From NCBI GenBank assembly GCA_009103225.1, contig RHPI01001946.1:318302-382301 (forward strand): 64,000 bases of DNA. The letters run 5' to 3'. The notes under the pieces were generated by a model, which was given only the letters and a program-made list of their open reading frames with translations, was not told the DNA's origin and made no database searches. The stretch comes from Chlorokybus atmophyticus. Lineage: Eukaryota > Plantae > Mesostigma and Chlorokybus algae. The position numbers and the translations under genes were made by a program. Numbering within the stretch: position 1 is the stretch's first letter; every line of letters begins with the position of its first letter. Below are positions 1 to 36,700 of this stretch, piece after piece.

Positions 1-121
1 CAAGCCACCCACCCCCCCACCCCCCCACACAGTGCATGCCACACTTCACCTCTGCATGGACACATGCAAGTATGACTGCACCGGCCTCCTCCTGTTTTAC
101 TCTGCTTCATCGTGCTTGCAG

Positions 122-4642: not shown

Positions 4643-5377
4643 GTTGAGAGTCAGGCTAACCCTCGATTGGCGGGGCAGGCGGTGGCAGCTGCTGCGGCGG
4701 TGGAGGAGGCGGGGTTGGGGCGCATGCCAGCATGCAGCAGCGGTCAGGAGCGAGCGGCTGCTGGGAGCGGGCTTGCGACAACAGCAACAACCACAACTGC
4801 AACAGCCTCAGCCACGAGACCCTTGGCGGATGCACTGTTGCGCCCTCAACACCTCAGCGCCGCAGCTTCCGCCTCCGCAGGGCCCAACACCACCGCCCTC
4901 CCCTCGACTAAGAATCCCCTTCAGGTACTTGTTTCAATGCAATCTGCTTTTGTCGCTTGAGCCAGATTGCATTGTTGCAAATTCAAACACAGTCAACAAA
5001 ACCATGAAGTGACGTGTCCATTATACAGCTGAGCTTGATGCAATGCACAAGCGTTGCCTTTCATGCATGTTCAACTGTACACGTACACCACATTGCATGA
5101 TTGTTTGCAATGCGATGGCTTGCAGTTGCAGGCATGTGTTTCTTGCAATTGTAGGCATGCATGCTGGTATGATGTGTGTGCGTGTTTACATGCTTTGCGA
5201 GTGCAAAGCATGCAAAAAAAATTCAATGCGTACATGCGCTGCCTTACGCGCGGATGACATTCGTGTCTGTGGGTACAGAGTGGGGCAGCTTGGACGCCAG
5301 ATCCACTATCGTACGCCCTCGCAGGCGTGCCATCCGCACCGAGACCCCTTCCACTGACCCTTCTATCCGCTTACGAG

Positions 5378-11300: not shown

Positions 11301-14300
11301 ACAACCAGCTGCAGCAGCCTGAGGCTGCTGTCGGCATCCTTGTTTATGCTCAGAAGCACCTGAATGCCGAGCTGAAAGAGTCCTGGTATGAAAAGCTGCA
11401 GCGTTGGGACGATGCGCTTGAAGCGTATGAACGCAAAAAGGCTTCTGCCACCACTCCCGCAATGGCCTTGCAAGCCGACCTTGGTACAGTGCTGATGGCC
11501 ATGACATAATACAAAAACATGTTGATGTGTCGTTAAGGGGCCATTCTGTCCTGGCAATCTGCGGTATCAAACATTTATCGCCGGCACTTGGCGCAGGTCG
11601 CATCAGATGTTTGGCAGCACTGGCGGAGTGGGAGGAGCTCAGCAAGCTATGCAAGGACACCTGGCCAAAGGCAGAGGGGGCTGCACAGCTGACAATGGCA
11701 CCCATGGCTGCCAATGCCGCATGGCAGATGGGCGAGTGGGAAGAGATGGAGAAGTACACAAGTGCATTGGGTATCAGTGGCACGGTGGGCACAGTTGGCT
11801 CTTTGAGCAATAAGGCATCCATCCAGGGCGCAGGAGCAGGTACCGGTACTCTTGCATATGCATGAGTGCATGCATGCGCGTATTGTGTGCACATATGTGT
11901 GCTTCATTGTTTGTTGATTGTCTGCACCTGCATGGGCTGCGCTAACACTGTCATGTATGCAGCCTTTAGCAACCGCAGCGACGGCGCCTTTTACAGGGCA
12001 GTGCTGTGCGTGCGCAAGGGCGAGTTCCCACAAGCACAGGCGCATGTTGAGCGTGCGCGCGAGCTTATCGCCACTGAACTGGCTGCACTTGTTGGTGAGA
12101 GTTACGAGCGTGCATATGGTGACATGGTTCGCGTCCAACAACTCGCTGAGATAGAGGAGGTCATGCACTACTGCCAGCTCAAGCCTGAGGAAGCAGATGA
12201 AAAACATCGCATGCAGCGCATGTGGAGTGATCGCATCCGCGGTGCTCAGCGTAACGTGGAGGTCTGGCAAGCAGTGCTGGCGGTACGATCCCTGATACTT
12301 CCATCTGCCGAAGATGCGCAAACTTGGCTCAAGTTTGCATCGCTTTGCCGCAAGAGTGGACGTGTGCGCCAGTCGCACCGCACCCTCGTGCGGTTGCTGC
12401 AGGCAGACCAGGCTAGGATGGCACCGAACGGGGAGGCTGTTGGCAATGGCTACATCCCTGGCTTTGGTATGCCCAATGTCTTTCTGGCGTACCTTAAGCA
12501 CATGTGGGCGGTTGGTGATGAAGGCAAGCGGCGCGACGCCTTCCGTCACCTACAGAGCTTTGCGGTCGAGCTTAACAACCGTGTGCGCGAGGGCGAGAAC
12601 ATGGACTCTGCCTTCATGTCAAAAGTGTACCTCAAGTTGGGTACGTGGCGGTGGGCGCTCTGCGAAGAGCTGAACGATGCTGCTATTCAGGATGTTCTGA
12701 GCTCGTTGCACGAGGCCAAGGAGGCGGGGCGAGCATGGGCAAAGGCATGGCATCATTGGGCACTGTTCAATGCTGCTGCTATGGAGCACTACTACCGTAC
12801 AGCGCCGCAGCTGGCGTCGCGTTATGTTGCACCGGCCATCACTGGTTTCTTCAGCTCGATCGCGTTGGGCACAGCTCAAGACTCGCCCCAGAGACGGGAT
12901 GGAAGCTTGCAGGACATCTTGCGGCTTCTCACCCTTTGGTTCAACCACGGCAGCACAGAGGAGGTTCAGGCCGCGCTGCGCGAGGGCTTCGACCACGTCA
13001 GCATTGACACTTGGCTTGTGGTCATCCCGCAGATCATTGCACGCATCCACTCCAACAGCCCTTCCGTGCGCAGCCTGATTCACCTTCTCCTCGTGCGCAT
13101 TGGCCACTACCACCCTCAGGCCCTCATGTATCCGCTGCTGGTTGCATGTAAGTCGCAAAGCCCCGGCAGGCGTGCGGCCGCTATGAGCGTCATCGAGAAT
13201 TTGCAGCAGCGCAGCGCGCCACTCGTTGAGCAAGCGCAGCTCGTGTCGCAAGAGCTCATACGCATAGCCATTCTGTGGCATGAGATGTGGCATGAAGCCC
13301 TTGAAGAAGCGAGCCGGCTGTACTTTGGAGAGCATAATGTGCAGGTGGGCATGTGTCTGCGAGTGTGATCCACCTTGGGTTGCGGATTGCTGGGTTTGTC
13401 TTTACTCTAGTGCTTTGTAGGGCATGCTGGCCGTGTTGGAGCCGCTTCATGCCATGATGGAGAAGCAGGGCCCCGAGACGCTCAAGGAGATCAACTTTGT
13501 CACAGCATATGGCCGCGAGCTTCAGGCGCGTGACAATGGCATGTATTGGGGTGTCGCAATAGTTTGCAGCTGTGGGAGTGCATACTGATGGTTCTGTGGG
13601 GATCGCAGGAGGCGAACGAATGGTGTCAGAAGTTCAAGCGCAGTGGCAAAGAGGCGGAGTTGAACCAGGCATGGGATCTTTACTACCACGTGTTCAAGCG
13701 TATCAACAAGCAGCTTCCAAGCCTCACAACCTTGGAGCTCCAGTTTGTGTCCCCGCACCTAGCTGCCGCTCAAAACCTGGAACTCGCCGTTCCTGGCACG
13801 TATCGCGCAGGCGCACCTGTTGTCACCATTGCAGGCTTTGCTCCCACGCTGGTTGTCATCACGTCAAAGCAACGCCCTCGCAAGTTCACGACACATGGAA
13901 GTGATGGCGGCGAGTATGTGTTCCTGCTGAAGGGCCACGAAGACTTGCGTCAGGTACGCAATGTGATGCAGTGATGACTTGCAATTGACATGACTGTGTC
14001 AATTGCAACTGAACATCTCCTTTGCAGGATGAACGTGTCATGCAGCTGTTCGGGCTGGTCAACACCTTGCTGGCCAATCACCGCGACACGGCTGAACGAG
14101 ACTTGTCGATTGTCCGGTACGCGGTGGTGCCGCTGTCTCCCAACAGCGGGTTGATAGGATGGGTGCCCAACTGCGACACCCTGCACTACCTCATCCGTGA
14201 GTACCGGGAAGCGCGCAACATCACCCTCAACATCGAGCACAGGATGATGGTTTCCATGGCGCCGGACTACGACCATCTCACGCTCATGGCCAAGGTGGAG

Positions 14301-15450
14301 GTGTTTGAGCACGCGCTCGAGTCCACCGCCGGCCAAGACATACACAAGGTTCTGTGGCTCAAGTCGCGCAGCTCCGAGGTGTGGCTGAGCCGCCGCACGA
14401 ACTACACGCGCAGCCTTGCCGTCATGAGCATGGTGGGATACATCCTCGGCCTTGGCGATCGCCACCCGAGCAATCTCATGCTTGACCGCTACAGCGGCAA
14501 GATTCTGCACATTGACTTTGGCGACTGCTTTGAAGCCTCCATGAACAGGGAGAAGTTCCCCGAAAAGGTGCCCTTCCGCCTCACGCGCATGCTCATCAAG
14601 GCGATGGAGGTCAGCGGCATCGAGGGCAACTTTCGCAAGACGTGTGAAGCCACCATGCACGTACTGCGTGCCAACAAGGACTCCGTCATGGCCATGCTGG
14701 AGGCATTTGTGCATGACCCCCTCATCAATTGGCGCCTCATGAACACTAATGAACCCATTGCTGACCCTGTCACTGGTGCCTTGACTTCCACACGCCATCA
14801 ACACCCTACTCCTGTCATGGTGCGTATATATTGCATGCACAAGCCAGAACGCTAATTTGAGTATTGGTGGTCAAACAAGATGTGTGTTTTGCAGGTGGAT
14901 GGCCGCTTGGAAGCCGGGGAGGGCCAGTCGCCACCGCGGAGAGGCGTCAGAGAGAAGGAGCTGTTGCAGGTGGGCTTTTGCCAAGTGTGTACACGTTCTG
15001 TTGAGGGTCCGTTGCTTAAGCATCCATGTGTGTTGGTCGTGCGCAGGCCGTGGGTCAGCTGGGAGACGCGAATGAGGTGTTGAACGAGCGCGCAGTTGCC
15101 GTCATGAAACGCATGAGTCACAAGCTGACGGGCCGGGACTTCCCCAGCGCGCATCTGGGCGGCAGCACGTACCTCTACGGGGGGCTTGTGTCTGGCAGTA
15201 GCCCTGGCACACCGACAGCAGGGGACCGGGCGGAAGGACCCCGCATGAGCGTCGAAGAGCAGGTGCAGAAACTTGTCCTCCAATCTACCTCGCATGAGAA
15301 CCTCTGCCAGAGCTATATTGGGTAAGACAAGCAGTCTGCGCGTACAAGATGTCTGCATTACAGCGATTGCACAACGCATCCCCGTGCTCCGTGCGCATAT
15401 GCCCGTCCTCATGAGATATGTCGTTGCGCAGATGGTGTCCGTTCTGGTGA
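5378..15450 (+). CDS. TOR: Target of rapamycin kinase (HEAT-FAT-FRB-kinase-FATC), about 30 introns
   Basis: Plant-like N-terminus ([28 protein letters not shown]), FAT ([13 protein letters not shown]), FRB ([19 protein letters not shown]), kinase ([35 protein letters not shown]), FATC end [15 protein letters not shown] (TGA 15448-15450). Start may instead be ATG 4724 (see findings). Confidence 0.98.
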
Positions 15451-17390: not shown

Positions 17391-17564
17391 AACTTCGTCC
17401 GGCTCGACACCACTTGCACCCAACTCTGCACAGCATTGCAAGCTTGCACATAATGTAAAGTGACAGTTATATGAGTGGGTTAAGTGAGTAAGCAAAGTGC
17501 AGTCCCTGGCCTACTCCGATGTGCTACTTGCCTCTAATTTCGCACAGCTATGTGCTTGGGTAGT

Positions 17565-18211
17565 TGTCATGCTTAAGGCTGGCATACGACGACAATGGGC
17601 CCATTGTCGTCGTATGCCAGCCTTCATCGAGCATGCCTACATCAAAGCCCTCGCCCGGCCTATTAGCATGAAGACTCACGCGCGTCACTAACCAGTAGCT
17701 AGGTCATGACGCTAGACCAGCTCATGACCGTAGCCTACATAGGCACCGCGCGTAGCAGTTCAGTGTTGAGTTCAGTTATAAGTTGTGTTCCATACCGAAT
17801 GTGGGGTTCTTTAAAAATAGCACATAGCACTCGATATGTCCGTTAGCTTAAAGCCAATATATTATTAGCTGAACAGTCATGAGTTGACTTGTATAAGTAT
17901 TCATGGTGTTCATTGGATCAGCTGGTGACATCGTGAGTGAGAAAGCTAAGAGATTGTGAAGCGACTTGAACTACAAACACGCCGTCCCGGTTACGAATCC
18001 CATCACCGTGTGAGAGCCTGTGCATGCTCTTGTGCGCTATGCTTGTGTTGCTGTGAGCTTGGTGTGCTTGGGTGCGGTGTGCTTGTTGGCATCAGTCAGG
18101 GCATAGCATCCACGAATTGCTCGCTGAATCACCTCACTTAATAGTGTAGCATATCTTCCTCTCATGCAGAGATCTGTGAAAGTAACATTACCTATAGTAG
18201 TGGCTTGTTGA
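17565..18211 (+). repeat. Terminal repeat A1 of retroelement copy 1
   Basis: Aligns by eye with 30437-31006 and 59002-59625 (e.g. GCACCGCGCGTAG, GGATCAGCTGGTGACA, GTGAGAGCCTGTGCATG, ending GTGGCTTGTTGA). Confidence 0.9.
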
Positions 18212-18631
18212 CTCACAATGTCACCCTCTTTGCTCAAGTGAGTGTAGTTGCATTCTGCATATCAGAGATTCAGCTTGTAGTTGGATACATCTACGTGCAT
18301 TGTTATCACTGTCATCACATAGTGCGCACAAGCACTAGTGTGTTGAGTGGTCGCACCATTGAGATAGAATTTATAGGGCACAACCAGTTTACCCTTCATA
18401 CACTTTTACTCTGGCATCAGCTGTATGAGCAGGCCCACCCCTTTCTTGCCAATAAACGAGGGGAACCCCAACAGCTGGAGCCCAACCTCCAACCTTACTT
18501 ACGAACGAGCAAGTAAAGGAAGCAGTTATTGCAACAGCAGAGGCTTACGCTCCGTTTCCGGCTTTACCACCTTCCACTCCACCTTTCGGCAACGAGCTTC
18601 TCCACCTCCTTTGAACAGTGACGACAACGAG

Positions 18632-20230
18632 ATGGAGTCCTCAAGCTAAATCAACTCCCTGCGCTTCTCTGGACGTCCGGGCACCACATCACTTCACCAG
18701 TTCATCATCAAGTTCCACTCCAAGATACGGCAGCAAGCCCTCAAGGACAAAGACTGGACAGACAAAGTGTCGATTCATGTGTCTGATCAGTACTTTAACC
18801 ATAAAGCACATGATTTTTGAAAATCTACTGCTGAGCACAAGATCGATGGCTTTGGCGAGCTTGCCAGCATCATAGCATCCACCTCATTAACAGCCCAGCA
18901 GTTGCTGTCCCTACAGCAGCTGCCCCACCAGCCTCAGTCACCAATCTCACCTTAGCTGTAGCTATGGACAAGGCAGAAAATAAAGAGGTCGAGGTGGTGG
19001 TGGTGGTGGCCTCCTTAACTGTTGCAGAGATCAAGGCCAAAAAAGCAGAGCCTATCGCTGGATGAGGGTACTTAACCGTACCGCTGCCATCATCAAAGAG
19101 CAGCAAGATGAGCATCAAGAGGCTTTGGAGCTGGGTACACCTCCACTACCAACTCCGAGCTCCCGCGGTCCAGCAAGCGGGCAGTATCTCCACCCTGAGG
19201 TCAGTAACATTGCGTGCACCAACCATTGCCATTGGTGCTGCCATGTCCGACTCTCATCTCCAAGACCCGTACGCTGCACTGCGGTGCACTTTCCCACCTC
19301 AAACCAACCGCCAAGTGGAGTTGAGACGCTTTCGACGGAAGCCCAACGAGGTCTCTTAGGCTGTACTCGAGGCTGAAAGGGCTGCTGAAGAACGCTTACT
19401 ACAAGATTGTTAGCAAGGCGGCGGCTTCAGTGGTGTATGTGGTCGAATTGAATCCCACCTTTCGTGATTCAACGCGCTTGACGCTAAACTACAGTCGGCC
19501 CCTTGGCTACACCCTGCAGGAAGCATGCAAGACTGCACAAGCCATCCACAAGCGCGCGGTGTACAAGAAAGCAATTTTGAAATTCAACCGGAGTGCTTTG
19601 CGTCCCATGACGAGCGCAAGTGCGGAGCCCCCTCGGCGAGACCGTAGTCGGAAGGTACCATTTATACGCAACAAGGATAACCAGTCAGCTCATGCTGGCC
19701 TTGTTGCTCCGGTGTCGTGCCATTGGTGTGGTCGTCATTGCACTATTAACAAAATGCACCGGAGACTATGGCAACCTTGAGTAAAACAACTGCCACAAGA
19801 CGGGACACTTGGAGGCAGTATGCTAGCTTAAGTTCCCCGAGATACGGCCCTCTATTGGCTACAACAACAGCAACAACGCTTGTAGCTACTGTGGAAGCAA
19901 CAACATCAACAACGCTGGTGGCTACAACAACAGCAACAATGCTGGTGGTCACAATAACAGCAACAACAACGCTGGTGGCCACAACCCCAACCCCGACAAC
20001 AACAGTAATAACAACGCTAGCGCTTGCAAGAAAGAGCCTGGTTACAGAGGGAGAATCCGCCCTCCACAGCGCAAAGGACATCCTCGTGCTGGAGCAGCTG
20101 CTGTTAAAGCACCAGGTCAAACCACCAGCTGTTGACGAAGTTGCAGCCCTCATGGCGCGCGTGGCATAGTTGAAGGAGAACAAGGAGCAGGACTATAAAT
20201 CCTATGCCGCTCGCTAGGTGTTGATGGCAC
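18632..20230 (+). pseudogene. Gag remnant of retroelement copy 1
   Basis: MESSS*INSLRFSGRPGTTSLHQFIIKF...TLNYSRPLGYTLQEA...PVSCHWCGRHC; colinear with the better-preserved Gag at 60400-62000 that has two CCHC knuckles. Confidence 0.8.
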
Positions 20231-22019
20231 CAAAATGGGAGAAGGACATTGTGACACCATTGCGTGTGCAACCGTCAAGACGTGCGCGCAGAGAAGCTGG
20301 CGCATTACCAACAGCGGCATTGTCAGAAGCAACAAGTGGGCCTGCGTCGGCAGCCACAACCACTGCTGGGACAACACCGTCAAACCAAATCAGCCGGCGC
20401 AGCAAGTGCGGATACACCTGGCACCACTCTGGCCCCAGTTATGGAAAGCACCAACACCGCAGCAGTCATGGGTGGTGAGCCTGTCTGCGACGGAGGAACC
20501 ACCCTTGGTATAGCTGAAGCCATTTCACCACGTCACGACTGTCGCTGCACTCACAACTGCTACCTCTGTCACAACGATTGCTGGAATTGCCACAATCATT
20601 GCTGCCGTTGATGCTGCCGCTCCCTCTGCACTCACCACTGCCACGCCTTCATCGGGGGTTCGTACAACCCCTCCACCACACCTTGATGTCACTCAACAAG
20701 TGCCGCGCGGACCACAAGCAAAGCGTGCCTGGGTGTTCATCCTGCGCAACATCGAACTAACAACCATTACGTACGGCTCAAGGGGGCATCGCACACGCGA
20801 GTAACAAGAAATGATCGCATCTTGCCATTGCCACCAAGAATACCATGCGCTACTGGAGCTCACACAACAACAGTTGGAGGATGAGATTATTGCAGGCATT
20901 GCTCCAAAGATGCGAGACCGTCTCTTCGGGGTGTCCTATCGGCAGTCTGTTGTGTTGGAGTTGGCATTCTAGTTATTGTTAACATATGCAAGGCTGCATG
21001 AAGCATTCACTCGGTCACGCCAGCCGATGCCCGCTTAGCTGCTTGACTTCAAGCCCTCACCATCGGACCCGCTCGGACTCCAGCATCGCTCAGTGCAAGA
21101 CCTTGTAGTGACAATATTAAACATACACTAGGCATTAACCCAGCGCTTCGTTTGCTTCGTTCAGTCAAGCCGACAAGAGCGGTTCTCGGTCTTCGAGCAA
21201 GCATATTGCTATTGGCTGTAGCAGCCCAAGGGCATGCGCGACGCCAAGCGTATCAGGCAGCACGCGTAGCTGCTAGCCAACCTGCAGGGGCATTCAACGT
21301 CACTGGTCCCTTCAGTGCACTCGCATTGCGGCCACCTTTGGCAACCACGATTACTCCGCAGGGGCAAGCAACTGCCGCTGACCAAGCGAGGGCGTTGGCG
21401 CAACAATTGAGGGGGTAAATCGCTCTGCTGCTGCCTTCTCTGGTTACGGATATGCCCGAGGATCAGTGCGATGCAGGGCCAGGTTACCTCACCTTACAAG
21501 GGGACACCACACAAAGAGGAGGAGCTGGTAGGAGAGCAACTTCATGCCGCGCTTAGGCGACAAGCAGTCATGCTGCACAAACCCAAGGGTAGTGCATTAA
21601 GACAGATAATGGGGATGCGAAAGGGCAGCAAAAACCGAGCACGGTTGGTGATGTGACTCGACTCAAATCACCCGGCTGTCCTCATTTTTGCCTTTGACAA
21701 CAAAGCATCTTGGTTGAGGGCATTCATACGTTCGCTGCGGCAAGCATATGATAATACTGCCACCATTGCTCCAAGCATTCTGGAGTGAGTGCAAGATCCA
21801 ATGCTGCGGCTGCCAGGAGTAGAAGCATCACAGCATCAGTGCATCGCCATCGCTCACGAGCTACACGCGCAGCAGGCCGACCTTCAACGCACAATACGGG
21901 CAGGCGCCATGATGGTGCCCGATGTGGGGGTGGTACAAAGAAGGTGGAAACCTACATGGCAGCGATCTTGCGAGTCCCCACCATTATCCATGACATGCGA
22001 CGACAGCTGCTGCGCGCAA

Positions 22020-22480
22020 TGTTGAAGAAGCTAGCAACACAAGTAGCTAAAGCTAATGCTGGACATGTTCACACACAACTCTCAACAGCCGCGAGAGCAT
22101 ACACAAGAGCAACACTTTCACTTGATTACAACTCAGTCATGGGTTGTATACCCGCTACAAGTACACCTGTCTACTCCAAAAGCAATTGTGTACGCTGCAC
22201 GTCATCTTTCATCATGAACCTAGCTTCATGACGTAGCTAACTTCAAGACCTTTTTAAGAAGCTAAGCCGCGCGCCCAACAATGACCTAGCCACTGAGTTA
22301 TAAGTGTTCTTTTGCACGCCGGGAAGTCGCGCCTCGAACCTTCTCTTTGACTAGAGTCTCCGCCTAGACTCTTCTCAATTGATGTCCGCGCCTGGAACCT
22401 TCTGCCGGCCAAACCTTTGGAGTTGACGCTTGTGCCTATATGGAGGGCAAGGCTGACCAGATATAGAAATATCTTTAAAA
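22020..22480 (-). mobile_element. Solo LTR nested in retroelement copy 1
   Basis: Absent from the aligned position of copy 2 (~63620); starts TGTTGAAG, ends CTTTAAAA (degenerate CTTCAACA); 5-bp TSD CGCAA/CGCAG; reverse complement resembles the solo LTR at 59887. Confidence 0.75.
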
Positions 22481-22989
22481 CGCAGTGTACCTGAATCCCA
22501 TGCCGCAGTATCACCACTGGACCGATGTGGACACGGAGCTCACGGCCACGTGGGAAGGGACATTGGTCAGAGAGGCAGCTCATACTGCCCGATAGATCTA
22601 CGCCGCAGAGCAATTGCAAGCTGAGTGCAAGGTAGGCTCACAAACACTAGGTCCACCAGACTTCCCTCCACAGCCGTTGGGGACACGGCTGGCATGATCC
22701 CATCCTCTTAAAGACGGCATCCACCATTACCTCCACCACAACCAGCACAAACCCCCCATTTTTAAGGGCTCCTCGCGCTTATCAACTGCCACAACAAGGC
22801 CGGTTTGGCAGAGGGAGGGACGAGGAGGAGGTCCTCAAAACCCAACAGGCAGTGGAGCTCTAGCTTCAATGCGCTCAGCACCTTCAGCAAAGAGACATGA
22901 GGCACCGATGCAAGCAGCCCGGAAAAAGAGGCCGCGCATTAACGCAAACGCTGCCATGGTCTCCAACCAGGGCAAGTATGTTACAATCA

Positions 22990-23365
22990 ATGGTCTGGCA
23001 CCCAGTGGGTGGTGCTAGACCCTCGAGCACAGCCTGTCATTGGACGCTTCCTCGCTTAAACCCTTGGCATTATCAGCTCGGATTTGCTGCCCTGCCCATA
23101 CATGTTGGACACGGCTATGAGGAGCCGCGACAAGGTGATTGGGGTCATCAAAGAGGCTTTTGCATTTGGTTTACAGGGTTGGACCCAACCCACACCACGG
23201 AGATTGTACAGTAGTGTGTGGTCATCAACGCCGGTGCCTGCGATTTTATGCTTCGGCAGGGCTTCAACTTCCACGTGGGCACGGGCCTTGACTGCTGGAC
23301 AGAGCAGGCATGATTTTGGCCACATTGGGATGGAGAGGTACAAGGCTTCCTACCGCTCAAGTTGA
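22990..23365 (+). pseudogene. Retropepsin-like aspartic protease remnant
   Basis: VVLDPRAQPVIGRFLA*TLGI (degenerate LDSGAQP motif) followed by CVVINAGACDFML...GLDCWTEQA*FWPHW, typical of streptophyte Ty3 proteases. Confidence 0.7.
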
Positions 23366-23744
23366 TTTCACGCACGCGCGCCCCATGCAAGGTGGCTGCA
23401 GCAGCCACTGGCAACCATGTGCGTAAGCAAGAAGCTGCATCAGCCCCATAAAAATTTCAAAGCCACATATGACAGCGCTTGCATCGGAGTTGCTGCCGTT
23501 GCAATAGGTCCTTGCCATAGACGGCTCCGCTCCGTCCCTTACAGTGGAAAGCAGGAGGATGCCATGGTTGATGGTGGCAATACAAGACCCATATGCACGC
23601 CGCTTGTGTGTACAAGTGGACGCGCACCTCTTTTTCTGACCCAACCTCTGATCACCTCGCGCTTCCACAATTACAAGGGACGCGGCAAGTGCAGGCATCA
23701 CCACATAGTGGGCAACGGCGTGGTAGAGTTCTACACCATTCACA

Positions 23745-26215
23745 ACAGCAGGGCATCACACTTTGGAGCTGTTCGGAGGCATCGAAAGTGGCCTCGCCGC
23801 TGTCCTCAACGCAAGGGTCAACGTCACTAAGTATTACTATAGTGACCCCGACCCACACGCGCAAACAGCCCTCAAACACCACTTACATCAGCTGCACGAG
23901 CGCTATTTACAGCAGTTGCCGTTGTTAGCAATGCAGGGCAGCCTCACACCGGTGCTAATGGGTTTCAGCAAGTTTGGCTGGATCCCTAATTTAACTATCG
24001 GTTTAAGATGATTTTTGCCAGGAATTCGCAAGATCTTTTACTATGTTAACTAATTTTATGGCAAGATCCTTAACTATGCTAGTACTTGTCACAAGCGGTC
24101 ATCGGCCGATCGCATTAAATTGTACCAGATCGCCAACAAAGTTGGAGACCAGGTTGTTACTATTTTCAATACGTATGGTCGGGACACAGACCTGTACGAA
24201 TGTGCATTGATATGTAGACCACTTCCCGTCATTACGTGCCTCCCTCCCTGACGCCGTTGGGGACATGGCAATTACAGTATAATGCATTTAAGTTCGAAAA
24301 TAAGCGCTACAGATCACTATAACGACCGTGATTGGTTCGGCCGATTAGGCATGGTTGCAGCCGTCACATTGTTGTAATGTCGATCGCTACACCGCAATAA
24401 TATGACTGCCAAGTTTATTTGCAACCTGATCATCAGTGTATCGCCGGTTCAAGTACCTACGGGCTTGCTCGCGGCCTACCATGAGCCTGCGGCCTACATG
24501 GTACTTGCCTAAATGGTGATCACGTAGCACACTGTGACCAATCTATCAAGTTTATGCAGCTCGCCGGTAGATGGCACAGGACGTTTGTACCTGACAAATA
24601 ACGATGTGGTTGGATGCTTTGCGCCGCTAAGGTTCTTGACCCCCACGTCACCCGCATATCACAACCTAGGTTAAAACACCTACCGGTGCCTAGCTGATTA
24701 TCTAGTTGTTTATTATTATATGCAACTATTGTTGTAAAAATTGTATGCAGGCCTACATGTAGATACCTTATGTCCAGGTACAAGAACATACAATGATTAT
24801 AATGTGCTTATACTAATGCATACCGGTATGTGCTGTTGGTGCATGTCGCGTGACACATGCATTGCGTAAGCATGCATGCAATGGATCGGGCCATACATGT
24901 GGCATGCAAGCATTGCGGCACGTGAGACTACTGAGGCAGCCGCCGCAAGGCATATATAATATATAAATGTCGTGCCATCTTGTGTCATTGTAGTCTAGTT
25001 GGTCAGTGCTCAGGTCGTGCGTTGTTAGCAACCTGATAGGTTCGTCTGCGCAGGTTCAAAACTCGGCAATGGAGTCGCGAACCCCCCTGCATTGCGACTT
25101 TTTTTGGGGGGGCCGCATAATGCGGTCATAACGTTGCTAGTTAGATCACGCATTCATATAAATCCTCTTAATACATGATCTCATCAAAAATAATTACAAG
25201 ATGTGGCCATTTTTAGGTTCAAGAAAAGACGGATACGAATGATGCACACCAACTACTTGACTTAATGGCAACTGCATACCAAACTACGTTGTGGCTGCAG
25301 CAGAAAAAGGTGCAAAAATTGATACGCTGCTTACATGCAGATCCCTAATCAAGTTATAGCTAGATCTCCATATTAATTATGGGCAAGGCCGAACTGTTAG
25401 GAGGCCATTTCTCCCCGTGTGAAGGCATTGCCACAAGACATCCGACAAATCAAGGAGGACCACTTGGTGTCCCTCGCCAACATCGACGTGTTGATAGCTG
25501 GATGGGAGTGCCAATGACACTTCATGGCAGGAAAAGGCCAAGGCCTTGAAGACCCTCGCTCGGGGCTGTTTTGGGAGTTGATGAGAGTCATCCACCTCCT
25601 CCAACAGCACCACATCTCCAGGCCGCCGGGGTACATCATTAAGAATGTGCACTCGGAGGACGACAAGCGTCCACACGTGGCCTCCAGCTACCAGCAGATG
25701 TGCTCCATTGTTGAGCACCCATTTAAGGTAAACACAGCGCGACATGGCTCACGCGCACATTGTGTATGCGTCAAGCGGACAAATTTGGCCATCGCAGACG
25801 AGATGATGACAGCGGAGTATACCCGCAGCCGACGGCCACACGACCTTTTGATTGATGATATCCTTGACTCTGGCCGTAAAGCCCAACCTGCCACACGTCT
25901 TAACCATAGCCTCTGCGGCTATGGTCAAGACACGTAACTTCTACTATTGCAACCTGGGCAACCGCGCCGCACTTCCTACTTTTGTGTCTTACCTGGGGTC
26001 CTATGCCTTTCACGATAGAGGTGACGGCATGTTGTTGGATAACGCAACAAGCCGCTTGAAAGAGCTGAAGAACCCAACATACGTGAGCGCGAACGCGCCA
26101 TTGGCTTCTTCCTCAACAATATCACGCGGTCCCAGCTGAACGATAGTAAGCAATGTCAGCTACTTGGCCGCACCATGAACCAAAATAGCCTGGTATGGCT
26201 GCTGGAGCTGAGCTT
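23745..26215 (+). pseudogene. Retrotransposon-encoded cytosine-5 DNA methyltransferase, interrupted and degenerate
   Basis: Motif I LELFGGIESG (23763); motif IV IDVLIAGWECQ (Cys 25509-25511); GLEDPRSGLFWELMR; motif VI GYIIKNV (ENV to KNV, 25641); motifs IX-X RERERAIGF...QLLGRTMNQNSL; split by an insertion at ~23949-25424. Confidence 0.88.
23949..25424. mobile_element. Unclassified ~1.47-kb AT-rich insertion splitting the DNMT
   Basis: DNMT frame resumes across it (AMQGSLT / ALPQDIR). Weak terminal inverted similarity CACACCGGTGCTAATGG vs CACACGGGGAGAAATGG (12/17); no clear TSD or ORF. Confidence 0.55.
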
Positions 26216-26399
26216 CGCGTTGCAGAACCGCCATGCGTGCTTGCAACAATCTCAAACACCTGGCTGGGGGGTAGGCTTATCGCATTGCCGACACCAAAGC
26301 AGCTCACATGGAGGAGCAAGCAGCGATATCAGTGAAAGACACCCGGTGGTGGCCAATGCCACCTCATCGGATCACGCCATTGGTCCTCCGACCATAACA

Positions 26400-28430
26400 G
26401 ACACACGAGAGAAGCTGGAGGCACTCCTCAACAAGTGGAGGCGCCAATTTAGTTACAATGTGAAGGAGCTACATCTACACATGTTGAGTATATCAAATGG
26501 ATATTGAGCTGGTGGACACCGAAGCAGTGTTTCAACGGCAATACAGGCTCTCCAAGTTGGAAGAGAACTTGGTGGAAGTAGGGTGTAAGGCCATGCTGAA
26601 CGCAGGCCTTATCGAAGAGTTCACGTCGGACTTTGCAACAGCAACCGTCATGCCATATTTAAAAGACTCAGCAGGCAACTGAACAGAAAGGCGCATGTGT
26701 GGCAATTATCGCCCCCCCAACAACAAGACCAAGCAAGACAGGTACCCAATGTCCACAGCAGACGGTATATTTAATGATGTAGGAGACTGCACGGTCTTCA
26801 GCATCCGCGACATGCGCCCAAGGTACAACCCAATCGCCATCAAGGATGAGGACAAGCACAAGACCTCCTTCTGGGGCAACCGGCAGTTGTACCAATGGAA
26901 GGTGATGCCGTTCGGGCTGAAGGATGCCCCCGCCAAGTTCCAGCGCGTTATGGACAAAGCCTTGAAGGGGCTGGTGTAACAGTTGAGGCCAAGTTTCATG
27001 ATATTTGGACCTTTTTTGGCCCATTTATCGGGCACCACGTTTTCGTGACTTGTGGTAGATATCGGCGAGTTATGAGTCTGCCGCTAATATCGACCGGGGC
27101 CCTAGGACCAGTCCGGAAGGTGCCAGAAAACGGAGGCCCAGTCGAGAAGGGCTCGACCAGATTGCTGGAAGGGCCTGGCGCCAAATAGTATAACTTGACC
27201 ATATGAGCACATATCAGGAGATCTTCGTGCGTAAGAAAGGTCTAAAGTGTATTGTAAGGTACTGCAATAATATCTTAGCATCTAGTTGTGACTAGCACGG
27301 GAACTGTCTAAACAGTAGCATGTGCAGACTGGTAGGTATAAAAGCGACATTCTACAATGTGCAATACAACCTTTAGCTCCCTAGTTTCTTGTGTGTAAGC
27401 CTGGTGGTGGTTAGCAAGGGTTGCTAGCGTGTGTCCACTGGTGTGTGCTTGCTTGTGTAACACAAGTCGGTGTGTAGCTTCGAGCACGTGCGCGTCCGTA
27501 TGCAAGTGGCAAGGGGCGCGTGTGTGCTTGGCAGAGGGGGCAAGGTTCCGGTGTGAATACCGTGCCTTGGTGAGAGGGTTGTTGTTTGGACCAACTCACA
27601 GGTGACAAGGCACGAGCACCGTCACAGCTGAACTTCACGCAGTGCTACATCGATGACATCCTCATCTTTAGCCGCAGCAATAAGGAGCATCTTCAGCACA
27701 GTGCTGGAACGGCTTTGGGGAGTGGGGATAACTGTGCATCCCGATATGTGCACCTTCTTCACCCACAAGGTGCCGTACTTAGGGCACATGATTGTGCCCC
27801 ATGGGGTGTACGTACAGCAGGCAAAGGTGGAGGCTCTGACAGCTATCCCTGCCCCCAGCGACCTCACGCGGTTGCGCGCCTTCCTAGGCCTCGCTAACTA
27901 CTATCAGCAGTTTGTGAAGGATTTTGCAAAGCTAGCACGGCCCTAAAATGAGCTAGTGAAGAAGGAGTCACAGCAGCAGGCCTTTGAAGAGCTGAAAATC
28001 AGACTCACCACAGCTCCCATTCTTCAACGCCTTGAATAAAGAGCTTGGTGCCCTACACCAAGCTCTTTATTGGTGCCCTACACCAAGCTCTTTATCTTCA
28101 CACCGACTGGAGCAAGCTTGGGATGGGAGCCGTGCTGGTGCATCACGATGAGAACAAGAAGAAGCGGGTGGTGTTATATGGCAGCCCATGCAACAATTGC
28201 CCGAAGCCAAGTATAGCAGCTACAAGGGCGAGTGCCGCTGCAGTATGGGCTAATTCCTTCCTTTCGGCCTCTCCGGTTCAGTCGACACTTCCACCTCATC
28301 ACCGACCATTAGCCACGCGAGTGGTTGATGACCAACCAACACTTGACGGGGATTTTGCCCGTTAGGCTCTACCATTGCAACAGTGTGATTTTCAGATCAA
28401 CCACCGCGGTGGCCTTAGCAACAAAAATGC
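26400..28430 (+). pseudogene. Reverse transcriptase and RNase H remnant (Ty3/Gypsy-type)
   Basis: RRMCGNYRP, DRYPM, WKVMPFGLKDAPAKFQRVMD, CYIDDILIFS, YLGH, LRAFLGLANYY, ILHTDWSKLGMGAVL. Confidence 0.93.
26975..27626. mobile_element. Solo LTR (652 bp) inserted in RT
   Basis: TGTAAC...GTCACA termini; TSD GCTGG/GCTGA; removal restores MDKALKGLNFTQCYIDD. Confidence 0.85.
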
Positions 28431-28699
28431 CAATGGGCTCAGTCGTAACCCTCACCTCGGCACGAGCTCGCCCATGCAGCAGCGGCCCCAGCAGTGGCTG
28501 CTATGTTTGCTGCCGCCGCATTTCGCTTAGGGCGCAAGACCGACACAGCTACCATCATAATAGCTAAGGTGATGCCTGCTCTTGAGCCAACTAGCCCTAC
28601 AGTTGACACCATAGCAGGGAATACTCGCGCTGTCAACATTGATGATACCGAGTTGGCACCCACTGATACCAGGCAGTACATTTGGCTGGACAAGCCATC

Positions 28700-30130
28700 C
28701 CTCTCCTTCCTTTAAAGTGGCCAGCTCCCCATCGGCATGAGTGCGCGTGAGAAGGATTGCGTCAATAAACGCACTCAGCACTAACGGTGGGCACGTGACA
28801 AGCTGTATTGCCGCCTTTATGGTGAAGACAAGAAGGTGCCAACCTCAGCCACACGCTAGAGCATCATCACTGCCCTCCATACTAAGCTTGGAGATTTTGG
28901 TGTCGAGTGAATACTCAGCCTTGTAAGGGCACAATATTTATGGCATGAGCTGTACAAACAGATGCAAGAGTTTGTATGCACCTGTCAGCAGTGTGATTTG
29001 GTTCGGCCAGCCTTAACACGCGCAGTACCACACTGCAACCTCTTCTCGTCTCCAACCTCTTCTATCGCTGGGGGCACGACATCTTGGGAGACGTTACCCT
29101 CGGCGTGCGGCAACCGCTACATGCTCATGATGATCAAGGACTTCTTCAAGAGGGTGGAGCTGGTGCCATTACCCGACAAGGGCAGTAGGTGGGTGTCTCA
29201 ACCTTCCTCTCATATGTCCTCAGCCGATTTAGCAGCTGCGCCGAGGTTATCAACGAGCAAGGCACTGAGTTCAGAGGAGAGTTCGACACCCTCTGGGACA
29301 GACAGGTGCTACATCGATCACCGCCGTACCTCACATCACCACGCACAAGCCGATGGCCTCGCCGAACGCGCGGTGCAGACCATTACAAAGGCACTGCGCA
29401 AGTAAGTGCTAGAGTATGAGAAGAACACGTGGGATGATCACCTCTCGTGGGTGGCTATCTATTGTCCAAGCAAGCAGCTCTGCGGGAGTATAGCCCGTAC
29501 TACTTGTTATTTGGGCGACCGCCGCTGCTTCCCTTTCGTGCACAGCAGGACGTGGATCGCGTTGTGAACAAACCCGACGACCCGACTGGATGCACCACAA
29601 TATTACCACACACGCAGCTGTTCGAGCATACCGTTTCCATGGCCTTCAACAACTTGCGCATCGCGCAGCACCGCGACACGCTACGAGCAAGTGCGCAGTG
29701 GCATCTGCAAAGAGCGCAAACCTCGGTTACAAGCGGACTTTGCCTATAGCATGGGGGCTACTATAAACACGCTTAACACCTCCATTGACTACACTGATTA
29801 CAAGATACTCAAGGTGTACCTTACAGGGGTGCTGCATCTCCTCGGCCGGAACGGCGAGAGATTGAAATCAACCTCTCGCCGTTCATCATGTTGTACTTCG
29901 AAGTACAACATGATGAATTGCGCGCCATGCCACCTCCCTTACGTAGCCGGCTTTCGGCGCATCAAGCACCCTCGCCTCGCTCGCAGTACGTTGCAAACGC
30001 TCTGGCAATGTTAACGACGACCCTCTCATGATGATGTGCAATAGCTGCAACATGGGACTGCATTGCAGTCTGGAGCCCCCATTGGATGCCGTGCCAATGG
30101 AGCAGTATTGATGCGACGACTGCCGCGTCA
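28700..30130 (+). pseudogene. DDE integrase with H2C2 zinc domain and C-terminal PHD finger, degenerate
   Basis: ALHTKLGDFG...CQQC; NRYMLMMIKDFFKRVELVPL; EQGTEFRGEF; HAQADGLAERAVQT; SPYYLLFGRPP; then CKRS...MMMCNSCNMGLHC...PPLDAVP...Y*CDDC (~29990-30125). Confidence 0.88.
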
Positions 30131-30197
30131 ACGGCCCTCCTCACTTGCATTAGAGGCTGAGCCTTGGGGCTAGCACCTTCTCAAAGGCTCAAGGGGG

Positions 30198-31231
30198 GTG
30201 GCTTGTTGATTGTGCACTCTATCACTCAGTATGTACACCATGGTGGAGAGCATCTCCACATGTTCATATTGAGCAGCACCGAACACGCTCCTGGGAGCAC
30301 TCGTGCTATGAGAGTCGGGTTATCTTTTGATTTGGCTAACATAATTCACTTTGCTACAGTAGCATGTTTAGCAAGCATGTCATTCCTTGCAGCTGTCCAA
30401 AACAGCATGACCCTCGACTCTCCTCGGCCCGACAGCTGTCATGCCCATTGTTCTCGTATGCCAGCCGTCATCGGGCATGCCTACATTAAAATCCCTCGCC
30501 CGGCCTATTAGCATAAACGCGCGTGCGATACTGACCAATAGCTAGGTTATGACTCTAGACTAGCTCCTGTCCGTAGTCTACATAAGCACCGCGCGTAGTT
30601 GTGAGTTCAGTTGTAAGTTGTGTTCTATATCGAGTGGGGGTTTCTTTAAAAACAGCACTCGATATTAACGTCAGCTGAAACACGATTTGAACAGGCATGA
30701 CTTGACTTGTATAATAGTTGTCATGGTATTCATGGATCAGCTGGTGACACTATGAGTGAGAAAGCTAAGAGCTTGTGAAGCAACTTGAAGAAACCCATTA
30801 CGTGTGAGAGCCTGTGCATGCGCATGTGCACTGAGCTTGTTATTGTTGTGAGCTTGGTGTGCTTGGTTGCGGTGTGCTTGTTGGCATCAGCCAGGGTATA
30901 GCATCCACGCATTGCTTATTCAATTACCGTACTTAACAGTGTAGCACATTTTCCACTCATGCAAAAAACTGTGTAAACAGCACTACCCACAATAGTGGCT
31001 TGTTGAATGTGCACTCTATCACACAGTATGTACACAATAGTGGAGAGCATCTAAACATGTTCGTATAAAGCAGCACCAGACACGCTCTCAGAAGCACTTG
31101 TGCTGTGAGAGCCGAGTTATCCTTTGCTTTTCACGACATGCTACAGTCTGCTACAGTAGCACGTCTAGCGGGCATACCTTCCCTTGGAGCTGTCCGAGAC
31201 AGCGTAACCCTCGACTCTCCTCGGCCCGACA
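30198..31231 (+). repeat. 3' terminal block B1-A2-B2 of retroelement copy 1
   Basis: B1 30198-30434 and B2 30995-31231 align end to end (GTGGCTTGTTGA...CCCTCGACTCTCCTCGGCCCGACA); A2 30437-31006 lies between; polypurine tract AAGGGGGG at 30191-30198 precedes B1. Confidence 0.9.
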
Positions 31232-31855
31232 TAATGTTTCGTAAAATTTGCATCATTAGACGCACGCTTATGTATAAATGCAATTGTATGCTTAATATCA
31301 CACATGTATACATAATTATAGATGTTATAGTAAAGTTACATTAATTGAATTCTCACCATGATATTGGCCCCCACATAATCCCCATCGCATCTTCTACTAT
31401 AAACATTGTTATATATGCTCATGGATTACTCTATCAGAAACCCTTGTGTGCTGGTTATGCATTTATGTGTCTTTGAACCATATTATTTTGCTGCTATCAT
31501 TATTGTGACTGTTGGTCGGCCGAGTGTGCCATGCCATGTTGTTCTGTACAACCAAATAGCATCAAAACTCCATTCGTAAGACTGTATAGCATTAAAAACG
31601 CAACTGCTTATAAGCAAGCATTACTGATGCTCATAACTAAAGTGATGCGTTGTGAATTGAGTTGCAAGCAGTCATTAGGAAGGCTTGCCAAGAGTCGTGA
31701 GCAGGGAGGGGGTGCTGCAACGCGGCGCGACCACGTCGCAAGTTGCGCCGCCGTCAGACGACTAGCAACATTGCGCGGTCGAATCAGTCAGCACCAGTCG
31801 ATCCACATGCTCGAACGGGACACTAACGGTCGACCGCGATGATTTGGGCGGTGTG

Positions 31856-33783: not shown

Positions 33784-36700
33784 ATGAGCACCGCAATGGA
33801 GGGCAGCGGTGAGGGGAGCCAGGAGGACAGGGCGCTGGCGGAGCGGCTGGAGCACCTCACCGTCCGCACTCAGGTGGGTATGCACAGCATAGACAACATA
33901 TGCCGACCCGCCCCACAATTATGTTCACAACAGTAAGCTAAGAGTAAACAGAGCGCCTGTTGCGTGATGAAGCAAGCGTTGCTCCGGTGGCTGGACACCG
34001 GCATTGCACGTTGCAATGGAGAATACCACGCACATACGAGAGGATGCACAGAAGCGGGTGTGATGGTGAAGTTCATGTCTGTCTCTGCCAAACATTAGTT
34101 GTAGCCTTTTCTCTTAACTCTTTGCTGCATTGGATGTGCGATATGAGTCCGTGCACAAGCCAACACTGTCAATCCCCCACTCAGATGTGTCCGTGTGCTG
34201 AGCATGACATGTGCACGCACACAGTAGTTGCGACATACAGAAGTGGGCGCCATCTTTGTCTGCCAAGGTTATCTCGATTGCCCGCTCGTTGTGCGATAGT
34301 GGCGAGCATTGTGCGTGCATGCACGCATCTGCTGCTCTTCAGCTTGAATGTGACGAACACGTGGTAGCCAAACACCGCGTCAGGAAGTGAACATGCACAC
34401 AATGATAACTCGTAACGTACTGAATCTGTCCGAGTGCATGTACACACGCATGCACATGACAGACTGTCAGTTTGTGCGCCCGCATAATTATGCCATGTTC
34501 AGATATGCATGTATGGTACGCTCTTGGACCGCCCGTGGACAAAGCCTTGGTTGATTTGCAGGCGTCCGTGCGTCGAACTAACTCCAGCGATGACATGACC
34601 GTGCCGTCGACATCAGAGCCAATGCATGCATCAATATCATCACCATCCACACCTTCTGCATCCACAACACCATCGCTCTTCCGCCCGACCCACACCGTGC
34701 TGTGGGACTACACCCCGCGCCCGCACTCGCACCATCACAACCACCTTCACAGACACCACAGCGATGCAGACTCGACCGACACAACAACAGCAGCAACATC
34801 ACCATCCCCAACATCATCACCACCGGGCTCGCCCACTCATAGCAGCAGCGAGCATAAGCCACGGTTCAGGCGGTTTTCGGTGTTTCGATCGGCTGCTCAT
34901 AGTAGTAGTGATGCGGATAGTGTGCATGAAAGTGGTGGTGACAATAAGGCGACGACGACGTCATTGTTGGCGGTGGCGCCGTCGTCGCCAAGTCACACGA
35001 CGAGGAGAAGGCACTTTGCGTCGCTGCTCGAGAGCCTTACGCTGCCGGATTCATCAGCAGGTTGGCAGCGTGTGTGTTTGTGGTGTGCGTGCTTGCGTGC
35101 GTTGGTCCTTGCGATGTGGTGCTGATTCAACCAACACACGCACATCAGGTATCCCGGATCGGCTGGCGATCACAAAGGGTTCTCTGTTGCGTCTGGTCGA
35201 AGTGCGCCCTGACGGCTGGTGGCTCGCTCAGCTTCCCGACGGCACCACCGGCCTCGGTAACAGGATTGACTGCTTGCCTGTTAGTAACGCTACTGTTCTT
35301 TAGTGTTTTGTTGCTTGTTTGTTGTTTCTGCTGCCCCATTCATGGACACATTACCATCTCAGTTCCTGGGGCGTACTTGTCCGCATTGAGGAGGGAGCAC
35401 ACGCCGTCGCGCGCATCGGTGAATTCAACAACGACAACAACTAGCCCGCCGACCAATGCGTTGGCGGTGACGTCCAGGGCGCAATCGGTGTTCACGCCGC
35501 TGACTTCAAGAGAAAGGGTAGATGCAACGGCGGAAGCAAAGAGCGGGACAGAAGCAATGCCCATGCTAGGGCGAAGCAACTCCGTGCATGGTGAGAGAAC
35601 ATACATGCGTACGCGCACGCACATGCACGCTGTTGATGAAGGTGTTGACGATGATGGTGGTGTTGATATAGAGTCCGCGTGGCTTCGAGCTCCAGCATCA
35701 ATGAGTGTCGGCTCCTCCTCCTCCGTCCCGGCAGAGCCACCCGCCTCCTCCTCCTCGTCAACAAGTCACGCCCCCGCGGGCATCAGCTCCAACAGCAGCC
35801 GCAATCCCACCTTCACATCCACCACGGGTTCCGTCCCGCCTTACCTCGAAGCCCTGCAGCGCATCGCCTCCTCATCCGCCTCCCACACCAACACGTACCA
35901 GCTCCCGCTGCCGCCAATCCAAGTCGCAGACGGGAAGGGCGGCGCGGGTATAGCCGAGAGCAGCCTGCGCCTGCAGCCACAGAGAGCAGACAACAATGTG
36001 GATGTGGGGAGTAAGAGGGTCCCGCGCGAGTCGGGTGAAGGAGGAGGAGGTGAGAACCACAGTACCGGCAGGCAGGAGAAGTCTTCCCCGCCTCGTCCAC
36101 CCCCGCGTCCTCGAACCCCTTCGCGCACATCACTCGCAGGCACCTCCTTCACCTCCTTATTCTCCCCAACACTATCCCCAACCTCAGACCGCAACCTGAC
36201 GGGTTCATCCTTGTTGGAGTGCTTATGCTTACCGATAGCGTGGGTTCGCCGCGCCCCCGCCTTAACCTTACGCGCCTTGGATGTGATTCGCTTCGCCGCG
36301 TGGAGCCACGCCGCCGCTCAGGTGACTGCCGTGTACGCCATCTACCAGGCGGTGATGGCGGTGATGGCGTACGCGATCGAGTCTCCCGCGCACAGGACCA
36401 CGTACGCGATGCCCGCCGCGGTCTGGACGCTCGTCGGGGCCGTGTGGGCGCTGCACCACGAGCGCAAGGCCAGCACGCACGCAAGAAGAGGGGTTGGAAG
36501 ACTAAGAGCGCTGGGGTGGTCGGTCTTTGCGGCCGGAGCATGCATCAGCATGTTTACGGTAAGACATTGGTAACCACACTGCGTGCGTGCGTGTGCCGCG
36601 TGTGCATCTCTGTGTGTACAGACACACAGATGCATATGTGTGTGTGCTTGTATCTGGGCACTTGTGCACACGCGCATGCGTGTGCATGTGAGCGTGCACG

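Follow-up and report, generated by a model that had tools for sequence, protein, structure and literature searches.

How does a Ty3/gypsy retrotransposon with a DDE integrase come to carry split direct repeats, and how could it replicate with them? The question is raised by a 64,000-nt stretch of the Chlorokybus atmophyticus genome (contig RHPI01001946.1, positions 318,302 to 382,301; hereafter, the window), in which, with high confidence, a green-lineage Ty3/gypsy retrotransposon is present as one old, inactivated copy and as the 5' part of another. Retrotransposons with long terminal repeats (LTRs), as well as retroviruses, are presented in teaching as inserting a linear complementary DNA (cDNA) that ends at the LTR edges, with circles as dead ends, and split direct repeats are taken as the hallmark of elements with a tyrosine recombinase. 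The window lineage departs from both rules. Based on its anatomy and that of its relatives, we consider it rather probable that the LTR used in reverse transcription has the form B-GC-A, that the cDNA is circularised and that the integrase opens the circle at a palindrome inside this LTR.

The first copy occupies positions 17566-31231 of the window with the layout A1-internal-polypurine tract-B1-GC-A2-B2 and the outer ends TGTC...GACA (Table 1). Repeat self-matches placed A1, A2, B1 and B2 where the original prediction, an earlier note made from these letters alone, had put them. Leaving gapped columns aside, A1 and A2 share 85% identity (77% counting gaps); B1 and B2 are 81% identical, with the final 22 nt the same in both and the element terminating in CCCGACA. 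Across the three A repeats of the window, sites shared by A1 and A2 numbered 64, compared with 37 shared by A1 and copy 2 and 37 shared by A2 and copy 2. These site patterns show that a single sequence gave both A1 and A2 when the element inserted and that the two have since decayed to the same extent; as equal-branch sisters they are not the separately evolving paralogues that DIRS-type replication could produce, a candidate that we excluded. A gypsy element nested within a DIRS-like shell was also excluded, given that 18.2-30.2 kb holds no second repeat pair. Copy 1 is old and dead, and a 50-bp perfect palindrome in its A1 (opposite-strand self-match 100% over 50 nt) is absent from A2 and copy 2 and therefore arose after insertion.

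Two short sequences mark the joins. The B1/A2 join is formed, as the note had it, by the palindrome GACA-GC-TGTC, which is found at this position only: GACAGCTGTC has a single occurrence in the window, at 30431-30440. That occurrence alone is within chance (at least one in 10 of 100 shuffles); the palindrome is, however, kept in relatives. Its GC spacer is confined to the internal junction and absent from the genomic termini, in keeping with a cut after CA on each strand and the disappearance of 2-nt 5' overhangs during repair. The 12-mer GTGGCTTGTTGA has four exact matches in the window, at 18200 (A1/internal join), 30198 (G-run/B1 join), 30995 (A2/B2 join) and 59614 (A/internal join, copy 2); with at most one mismatch, six sites were observed against about 0.46 expected, and 0 of 100 shuffles reached six. 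As a junction mark it is not general: GTGGCTTGTTGA is specific to the window family, and the corresponding overlap is 0-3 nt in other families.

A polypurine-type G-run (AAGGGGG) directly abuts B1, in agreement with the note, and a primer-binding site follows A. For this reason the LTR of reverse transcription is, as had also been proposed, B+A (in full, B-GC-A) and not A+B. It follows that A2|B2 is the U5|U3 junction and that the integrase sites lie inside U3. Polypurine tract and primer site are thus present as in any Ty3/gypsy element, but they bound B-GC-A and not the genomic termini, and the TG...CA termini fall at the B|A boundary inside the LTR so delimited. In place of two complete identical LTRs, the element has A only at its 5' end and B-GC-A-B at its 3' end. 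Within A, a TATA-like box lies upstream of an internal segment described below, an arrangement that recurs about 30 nt upstream of this segment in copy 2 and in two relatives (L009 and L013), and TGTAA stands shortly before the A end in copy 1 (about 20 nt), copy 2, L013 and L008. We read the former as probably marking the transcription start and the latter as a possible polyadenylation signal, which we take to be of the Chlamydomonas type.

Copy 2 opens with TGTCATGCC at 59002, and its upstream flank is unrelated to that of copy 1. As the note had observed, its A repeat stands alone at the 5' end and runs directly into the same internal sequence as in copy 1, with no B between. Two open reading frames (ORFs) in this copy, 60860-61480 and 62055-63203, had no homologues.

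Every reading frame of the copy 1 coding region is broken. Applied to translated pieces, Pfam recovered RVT_1, RT_RNaseH (with RT_RNaseH_2) and Integrase_H2C2 in gypsy order on the + strand, and the best solved-structure match of the integrase piece was Ty3 Gag-Pol, which upheld the prediction of a gypsy-type element with a DDE integrase. Pfam on these pieces missed a C5 DNA methyltransferase (DNMT), recovered only through a search against all proteins, in which the piece 25518-25934 had 167 matches, the best being PF00145 C5 DNA methyltransferases, many of them inside gypsy polyproteins; solved-structure searches with the two DNMT pieces alone gave no match. This Dnmt3-like domain lies between the protease region and the reverse transcriptase (RT). 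It is split by an insertion near both edges of which a 10-bp repeat, GATCCCTAAT, is found (23981 and 25340), a weak sign; a second segment, within the RT, showed neither terminal repeats nor a recognisable duplication and could be an old insertion. The order RT-RNase H-integrase is that of Ty3/gypsy elements, and the integrase remnant retains the H2C2 finger and part of the DDE core: compared with six intact relatives, its first D region is garbled, its second D reads E and its third motif (HAQADGLAER) is retained. We assign with high confidence the pol order protease (queried)-DNMT-RT-RNase H-integrase (H2C2 and DDE)-PHD and membership of the KnitGypsy-Dnmt3 group. No tyrosine recombinase (PF00589 or other) was detected in 131 six-frame pieces of at least 50 amino acids, as the note had stated; this negative is tempered by the decay of the copy and by Pfam's weak detection of DIRS recombinases. 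Scanning the window for Rfam families and tRNAs gave no match. The DNMT domain, the two internal insertions, the self-priming site described below and the family specificity of GTGGCTTGTTGA had escaped the original prediction.

Table 1 Features of both copies in the window, and self-priming pairs of relatives (positions in the respective locus)
Feature	Position	Strand	Remarks
Putative left target-site duplication TAGT	17562-17565	.	
Repeat A1	17566-18211	+	opens with TGTCATGC; in the model, 3' part of U3 + R + U5
50-bp perfect palindrome	17575-17624	.	A1 only
TATA-like TATAAG	17892-17897	+	32 nt upstream of self-primer segment; putative promoter
Copy 1 self-primer segment inside A	17924-17938	+	predicted transcript 5' end; 14/15 complementary to 18211-18225
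12-mer GTGGCTTGTTGA at A1/internal join	18200-18211	+	
Copy 1 primer-binding site, self-priming type	18211-18225	+	
Decayed gag/protease region	18226-23735	+	no Pfam match; 65-75% identical to copy 2 60256-63721
CAACAA-rich low-complexity repeat	19856-19998		within gag/protease region
DNMT, N-terminal part (motif I region)	23736-23948	+	tblastn of DNMT-bearing gypsy polyproteins (carry PF00145)
Insertion within DNMT, ~1.45 kb	23949-25400	.	homologues contiguous across
DNMT, C-terminal part	25401-26250	+	all-protein search and tblastn mapping
RT, N-terminal part	26488-27030	+	RVT_1 E = 2e-8; tblastn
Insertion in RT, ~600 bp	27031-27627	.	between FQRVMD motif and YIDD
RT, C-terminal part (YIDD, thumb)	27628-28000	+	
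RNase H, Ty3/gypsy type	28036-28500	+	RT_RNaseH, RT_RNaseH_2; tblastn
Integrase remnant, H2C2 zinc finger and DDE core	28680-29951	+	frameshifted
PHD-finger remnant, integrase C-terminus	29983-30141	+	weak PHD match, E = 0.029; tblastn to P0176 PHD
Polypurine-type G-run	30183-30197	+	AAGGGGG abuts B1 on its 5' side
Repeat B1	30198-30434	+	terminates CCCGACA; in the model, 5' part of U3
Palindrome GACA-GC-TGTC	30431-30440	.	B1/A2 join; GC spacer 30435-30436; proposed abutted integrase-site pair
Repeat A2	30437-31006	+	matches A1
TGTAA	30972-30976	+	possible green-algal polyadenylation signal
Repeat B2	30995-31231	+	first 12 nt are the shared 12-mer, overlapping A2 end; in the model, A2|B2 is the U5|U3 junction
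Putative right target-site duplication TAAT	31232-31235	.	
Copy 2 repeat A	59002-59625	+	self-primer segment 59311-59325; 12-mer 59614-59625
Copy 2 primer-binding site	59625-59639	+	15/15 complementary to 59311-59325; 0/300 shuffles
Copy 2 internal (gag) region	59640-64000	+	runs off window; 65-75% identical to copy 1
L010 self-priming pair	site after A 8403-8417; segment in A 8294-8308		15 nt
L008 self-priming pair	site after A 9979-9991; segment in A 9843-9855		13 nt
L012 self-priming pair	site after A from 4645; segment in A from 4533		12 nt
L013 self-priming pair	site after A 1015-1033; segment in A 711-729		19 nt

Relatives of the window element were found by protein-level search, at 30-50% protein identity, in Klebsormidium nitens (L013), in Closterium strains NIES-54 (L006, L010) and NIES-53 (L008, L011) and in metagenomes (including L004 and L009). 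Searches of metagenome and viral collections with exact DNA patterns for further copies of the window family gave 0 matches, the RT-thumb piece matched only fragments at 58% identity or less, and DNA comparison of the window with the K. nitens locus showed no similarity. By pairwise scores, the best protein match was the metagenome protein P0176, with the same domain order. The K. nitens element has A1 at 360-1018 and B1 at 13917-14098, followed by GC, A2 and B2, with 98% identity between its A repeats and 97% between its B repeats; its internal region encodes a protease, a DNMT upstream of RT, RT, RNase H and integrase, then a PHD finger, and its junction reads GGCA-GC-TGCC, with a G-run before B1 and TCTT on both flanks. 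The full A1-internal-B1-GC-A2-B2 layout was also found in L010 (junction CTGACA-GC-TGTCAC; GAAC on both flanks) and the G-run|B|CA-GC-TG|A|B layout in L012, a Closterium element of the same family, in which a duplicated 1.6-kb segment, assembly gaps and differing outer flanks leave no usable target duplication. The 3' arrangement G-run|B1|palindrome|A2|B2 is present in L006 (CCGACA-GC-TGTCAT; B1 and B2 98% identical) and in the metagenome element L004 (CCGACA-GC-TGTCAC), whose domains run RT-RNase H-DNMT-integrase-PHD. L009, the closest relative of the window element, has the window's domain order and G-run|B|ACGACA-GC-TGTCAC|A, and variant junctions occur in L005 (TACA-GC-TGTA) and L002 (GTCA-GC-TGTCATGCC). 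L008, of the same family as L006, has A-internal-B only, with AGAG on both flanks.

Overall, the palindrome with its GC spacer is conserved in L004, L006/L011, L009, L010 and L012, and in its GGCA-GC-TGCC form in L013, and the G-run is kept directly before B in L004, L006, L008, L009, L010 and L013. We did not count L011 as an independent case, because it is the orthologue of L006 in the sister strain. The recurrence of the layout in K. nitens, two Closterium strains and metagenome contigs bears out the note's claim that it is not a one-off truncation and shows that it is neither a misassembly nor chance nesting. Since relatives from Klebsormidium, Closterium and metagenomes share it, the split layout is a lineage feature and, judging from these sequences, appears to be a property of a broad algal gypsy clade.

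Intact relatives encode a protease, DNMT, RT, RNase H, H2C2 and rve, often with a PHD finger, and the D, D and E integrase motifs and the H2C2 finger are conserved in all six of them. A search of these intact relatives for a tyrosine recombinase, a check that the original prediction had proposed for intact copies, found none in their polyproteins or in their other ORFs, which matched nothing. Comparison of termini and target duplications, likewise proposed there, gave perfect 4-bp duplications in the three young relatives L008, L010 and L013, and agreement at three of the four positions in the old window copy. DDE integration is indicated by these three perfect duplications and by the TG...CA inverted termini.

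Two side observations concern these loci. The metagenome contigs L009, L005 and L002 hold 1.0-2.2 head-to-tail units of the internal region plus one B-GC-A (2.2 tandem units in L009, 1-18357), with one of the contigs labelled circular by the assembler; such contigs could reflect tandem arrays, genuine one-LTR circles or dispersed copies that the assembly collapsed. At the L006 locus, another small LTR element (2975-3115 and 9751-9891; 141-bp TG...CA repeats; TCCG flanks) lies in the same Copia copy as the L006 element.

The primer-binding site is of an unusual kind. The stretch of 12-19 nt that follows A is the perfect complement of a segment inside A itself in four unrelated sequence families, and complementarity at the A end was found in every family with a defined A end (Table 1), with equivalent pairs in L009, L002 and L005. 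Lengths as great as those observed arose in no more than 1 of 300 shuffles, and minimum-energy RNA folds pair both segments in copy 2 of the window (z = -4.2) and in L010. As a tRNA-type primer site, GTGGCTTGTTGA was rejected: it is not known to resemble any tRNA 3' end, and the complementarity begins at its last base and targets the element's own A repeat. From its sequence, the site after A looks like a Tf1-type self-priming site, and it is a new element of the described anatomy of these retrotransposons. Self-priming is known in the Tf1/sushi and Tcn1 gypsy elements (PMC6317226).

The architecture itself has been on record since 2018. De Mendoza et al. (2018, PMC5890265) reported KnitGypsy-Dnmt3 of K. 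nitens, whose Ty3/gypsy polyprotein includes a C5 methyltransferase of Dnmt3 type, and the legend of their Fig. 4c likens its A-coding-B-A-B repeats to those of DIRS elements ('the same as a DIRS retrotransposon'), an architecture that we confirmed on the K. nitens locus. In its main text, that paper offers neither a mechanism nor a junction sequence, a target duplication or a primer site, and no other mention of such DNMT-bearing split-repeat gypsy elements was found in the literature searched. The novelty claimed in the original prediction thus falls for the architecture and holds for the replication mode, which is undescribed.

Read together, the anatomy and its conservation, the target duplications, the DDE triad of the relatives and the self-complementary primer site lead us to infer the following cycle, in which, as in the note, a circularised cDNA is opened by the integrase at the palindrome. 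Genomic RNA would span A1 to a polyadenylation site near the A2 end and carry the whole of B1-GC-A2. Minus-strand synthesis would be primed at the site directly after A, paired with the A-internal segment that is probably the RNA 5' end, 30 nt downstream of the TATA box, and plus-strand synthesis would begin at the G-run directly before B. Ordinary strand transfers would then yield a linear cDNA, (B-GC-A)-internal-(B-GC-A), in which the integrase sites 5'-TGTCA...GACA-3' would sit abutted inside U3 as CA-GC-TG, away from the cDNA ends. These ends would first be joined, U5 to U3, to form the A2|B2 junction, as in a retroviral two-LTR circle. The integrase would next cut after CA on both strands at the palindrome next to the primer-binding site, linearising the circle and leaving recessed CA-3'OH ends with 2-nt GC 5' overhangs, a product that would be chemically equal to 3'-processed retroviral DNA. 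Strand transfer would create the 4-bp target duplication, and the GC overhangs would be lost in repair. Because B1-GC-A2 would be intact in such an RNA, the ends would be inherited through the internal junction, which would hand complete end sequences to the next cycle, like the internal junction of DIRS and PAT elements. Cleavage of this kind has a precedent in the foamy-virus and HIV-1 integrases, which cleave the palindromic two-LTR-circle junction (PMC1180852, PMC1905944). A hint of a junction re-made in each cycle, as the model would expect, comes from one Closterium family, in which the A|B join reads CCTTCA|GTGGG in L010 (15985-16000) and CCTT|GTGGG in L012 (17470-17520), with CA kept at the A1 end of both; heterogeneity of this kind is known at retroviral circle junctions.

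Several observations weigh against this model. A circle opened at the other palindrome should give the isomer A-B-GC-A-internal-B, and it was seen at 0 of 5 5' ends (two in the window, L008, L010 and L012), all five of which pass from A straight to the primer site; given this lack, either the model leaves unexplained why one palindrome is chosen or a simple circle is not the pathway. L006 (10287-15781) has nothing 5' of the middle of its DNMT, yet its 3' B-GC-A-B is intact, and the L006/L011 copy sits in frame inside a Copia pol ORF with the Copia reading frame kept; it may have inserted already truncated, which the model does not predict, and rebuilding its empty site from a paralogous Copia was unsuccessful. 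In L004, whose B copies are 97% identical, no A1 was found in the 12.9 kb upstream (1-12897), which is unexplained. The minimum-energy fold of L008 does not use its complementary pair, and the window itself offers an imperfect target duplication and a single 3' end. The A-internal-B form of L008 could stem from a one-LTR circle, from cuts at both palindromes or from recombination between B1 and B2 at a later time, and so does not discriminate.

The main rival shares the B-GC-A LTR and internal integrase sites but needs no closed circle: RT template switching or linear concatemers would supply the additional right-end B, for example by re-annealing of the plus-strand end to the start of U3 (which the 12-nt identity would help in the window family) or by rolling synthesis, and the integrase would trim long terminal pieces at the outermost suitable palindromes. 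We judge this linear route unlikely, while giving it real weight. The 12-mer of the window family, the same at the U3 start and after U5, would permit such a jump, but the overlap of 0-3 nt in the Closterium and Klebsormidium families means that a homology-driven jump cannot be general. Right-end-specific extension would explain the uniform passage from A to primer site more easily than a random choice of palindrome, whereas the simplest template switches that we drew put the extra LTR on the left and not on the right. Head-to-tail units joined through B-GC-A in L009 and L005 also speak for it, although in these contigs dispersed copies may have been collapsed into tandem units during assembly.

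Far less probable is a DIRS/PAT-like mechanism, in which the tyrosine recombinase was lost or is supplied in trans by a true DIRS element, the circle is integrated site-specifically and the DDE integrase is a passenger. It would account for a layout identical to that of PAT, Ngaro, TOC1 and SymbioDIRS (PMC5890265, PMC9940879), but no recombinase was detected in the window pieces, the intact relatives or their accessory ORFs, the duplications and inverted termini are hallmarks of DDE integration and not of tyrosine recombination, and the DDE triad and H2C2 finger are conserved across all intact relatives. An accident at one locus (misassembly, a nested solo repeat or unequal recombination) might have been suspected from the window, where the family shows one 3' end only, in an old copy with two other insertions. 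This origin is refuted for the lineage and hardly credible for the locus: the same junction, 2-bp GC spacer and G-run position recur in six or more further elements, drawn from three named algal genomes and from several metagenomes and among them copies whose repeats are 97-98% identical, and the architecture was independently reported in print. We thus retain the circle model for the window lineage. Its extension, in which a whole green-algal and charophyte Ty3/gypsy clade replicates through an obligatory circular cDNA of the two-LTR type, with the DDE integrase opening an inherited CA-GC-TG palindrome in U3, is put forward tentatively, as a possibility that falls a little short of being probable.

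If this extension is true, a by-product held to be a dead end in retroviruses would be a genuine integration intermediate, and the DIRS-like layout would be explained as convergent, with a different enzyme. Comparative anatomy turns a one-line legend remark of 2018 into a testable mechanism, and because young copies with 97-98% identical repeats occur in culturable algae (K. nitens and Closterium), the circle and its cleavage can be searched for directly. Annotation is affected as well: with standard LTR finders, such elements will be missed or given wrong limits, and classifiers may label them as DIRS.

Elsewhere in the window, a long exon at 10515-15412 (ORF 11866-13368) encodes the FAT and FRB domains of a TOR kinase and provides host gene context, that of a eukaryote with long exons, and 35062-38988 (ORF 37759-38988) encodes FAD- and NAD-binding domains of a ferric reductase or NADPH oxidase. 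Between the two copies lie tandem arrays at 46945-47438, 51036-51205, 52762-53084 and 53823-54081, with periods of 242, 91, 34/68 and 124. The G+C content falls sharply to 32% at 54001-56000, where two ORFs (54280-54963 on the - strand and 54859-55743 on the + strand) had no Pfam match, and units of about 930 bp are repeated beside this stretch, at 56153-57636.

Among known systems, the closest is KnitGypsy-Dnmt3, which the window element resembles in domain content and repeats, with a DNMT upstream of RT in a gypsy polyprotein and an A-coding-B-A-B layout around gypsy domains. It differs in being dead and in forming a separate family, with about 30-50% protein identity to any relative, and is a new, decayed member of the same kind, gypsy elements that bear a DNMT and have DIRS-like repeats. 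PAT-like elements, Ngaro, TOC1/TOC3 and SymbioDIRS have the same A1-internal-B1-A2-B2 order, with a B-A junction that transmits the ends and a presumed circle. These elements, however, have a tyrosine recombinase and neither DDE integrase, protease nor target duplications, while the window lineage shows the reverse: of the DIRS hallmarks it has the split direct repeats, and it has neither the recombinase nor integration without duplication. The likeness is thus convergent in layout and not in enzyme.

The primer site of Tf1/sushi and Tcn1 is likewise complementary to the element's own R/U5 region and not to a tRNA; these elements have ordinary LTRs, however, and the likeness is one of arrangement. 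Members of the IS3 family (IS911-type) also use a DDE enzyme on abutted TG...CA ends with a spacer of a few base pairs and a circular intermediate, but they are DNA transposons without reverse transcription, in which the transposase forms the junction. The window element is a retroelement with RT and RNase H; only its abutted TG...CA ends with a short spacer resemble IS3, and the IS3-like junction of the original prediction is an analogy, not a sign of kinship. Retroviral two-LTR circles, finally, also contain a palindrome of abutted CA...TG ends that a DDE enzyme can cleave after CA on both strands. In retroviruses, this palindrome is the ligated U5|U3 join itself and circles are at most a side pathway, whereas in the window lineage the palindrome is inherited within U3, the U5|U3 join lies inside the integrated element and the circular pathway would be obligatory.

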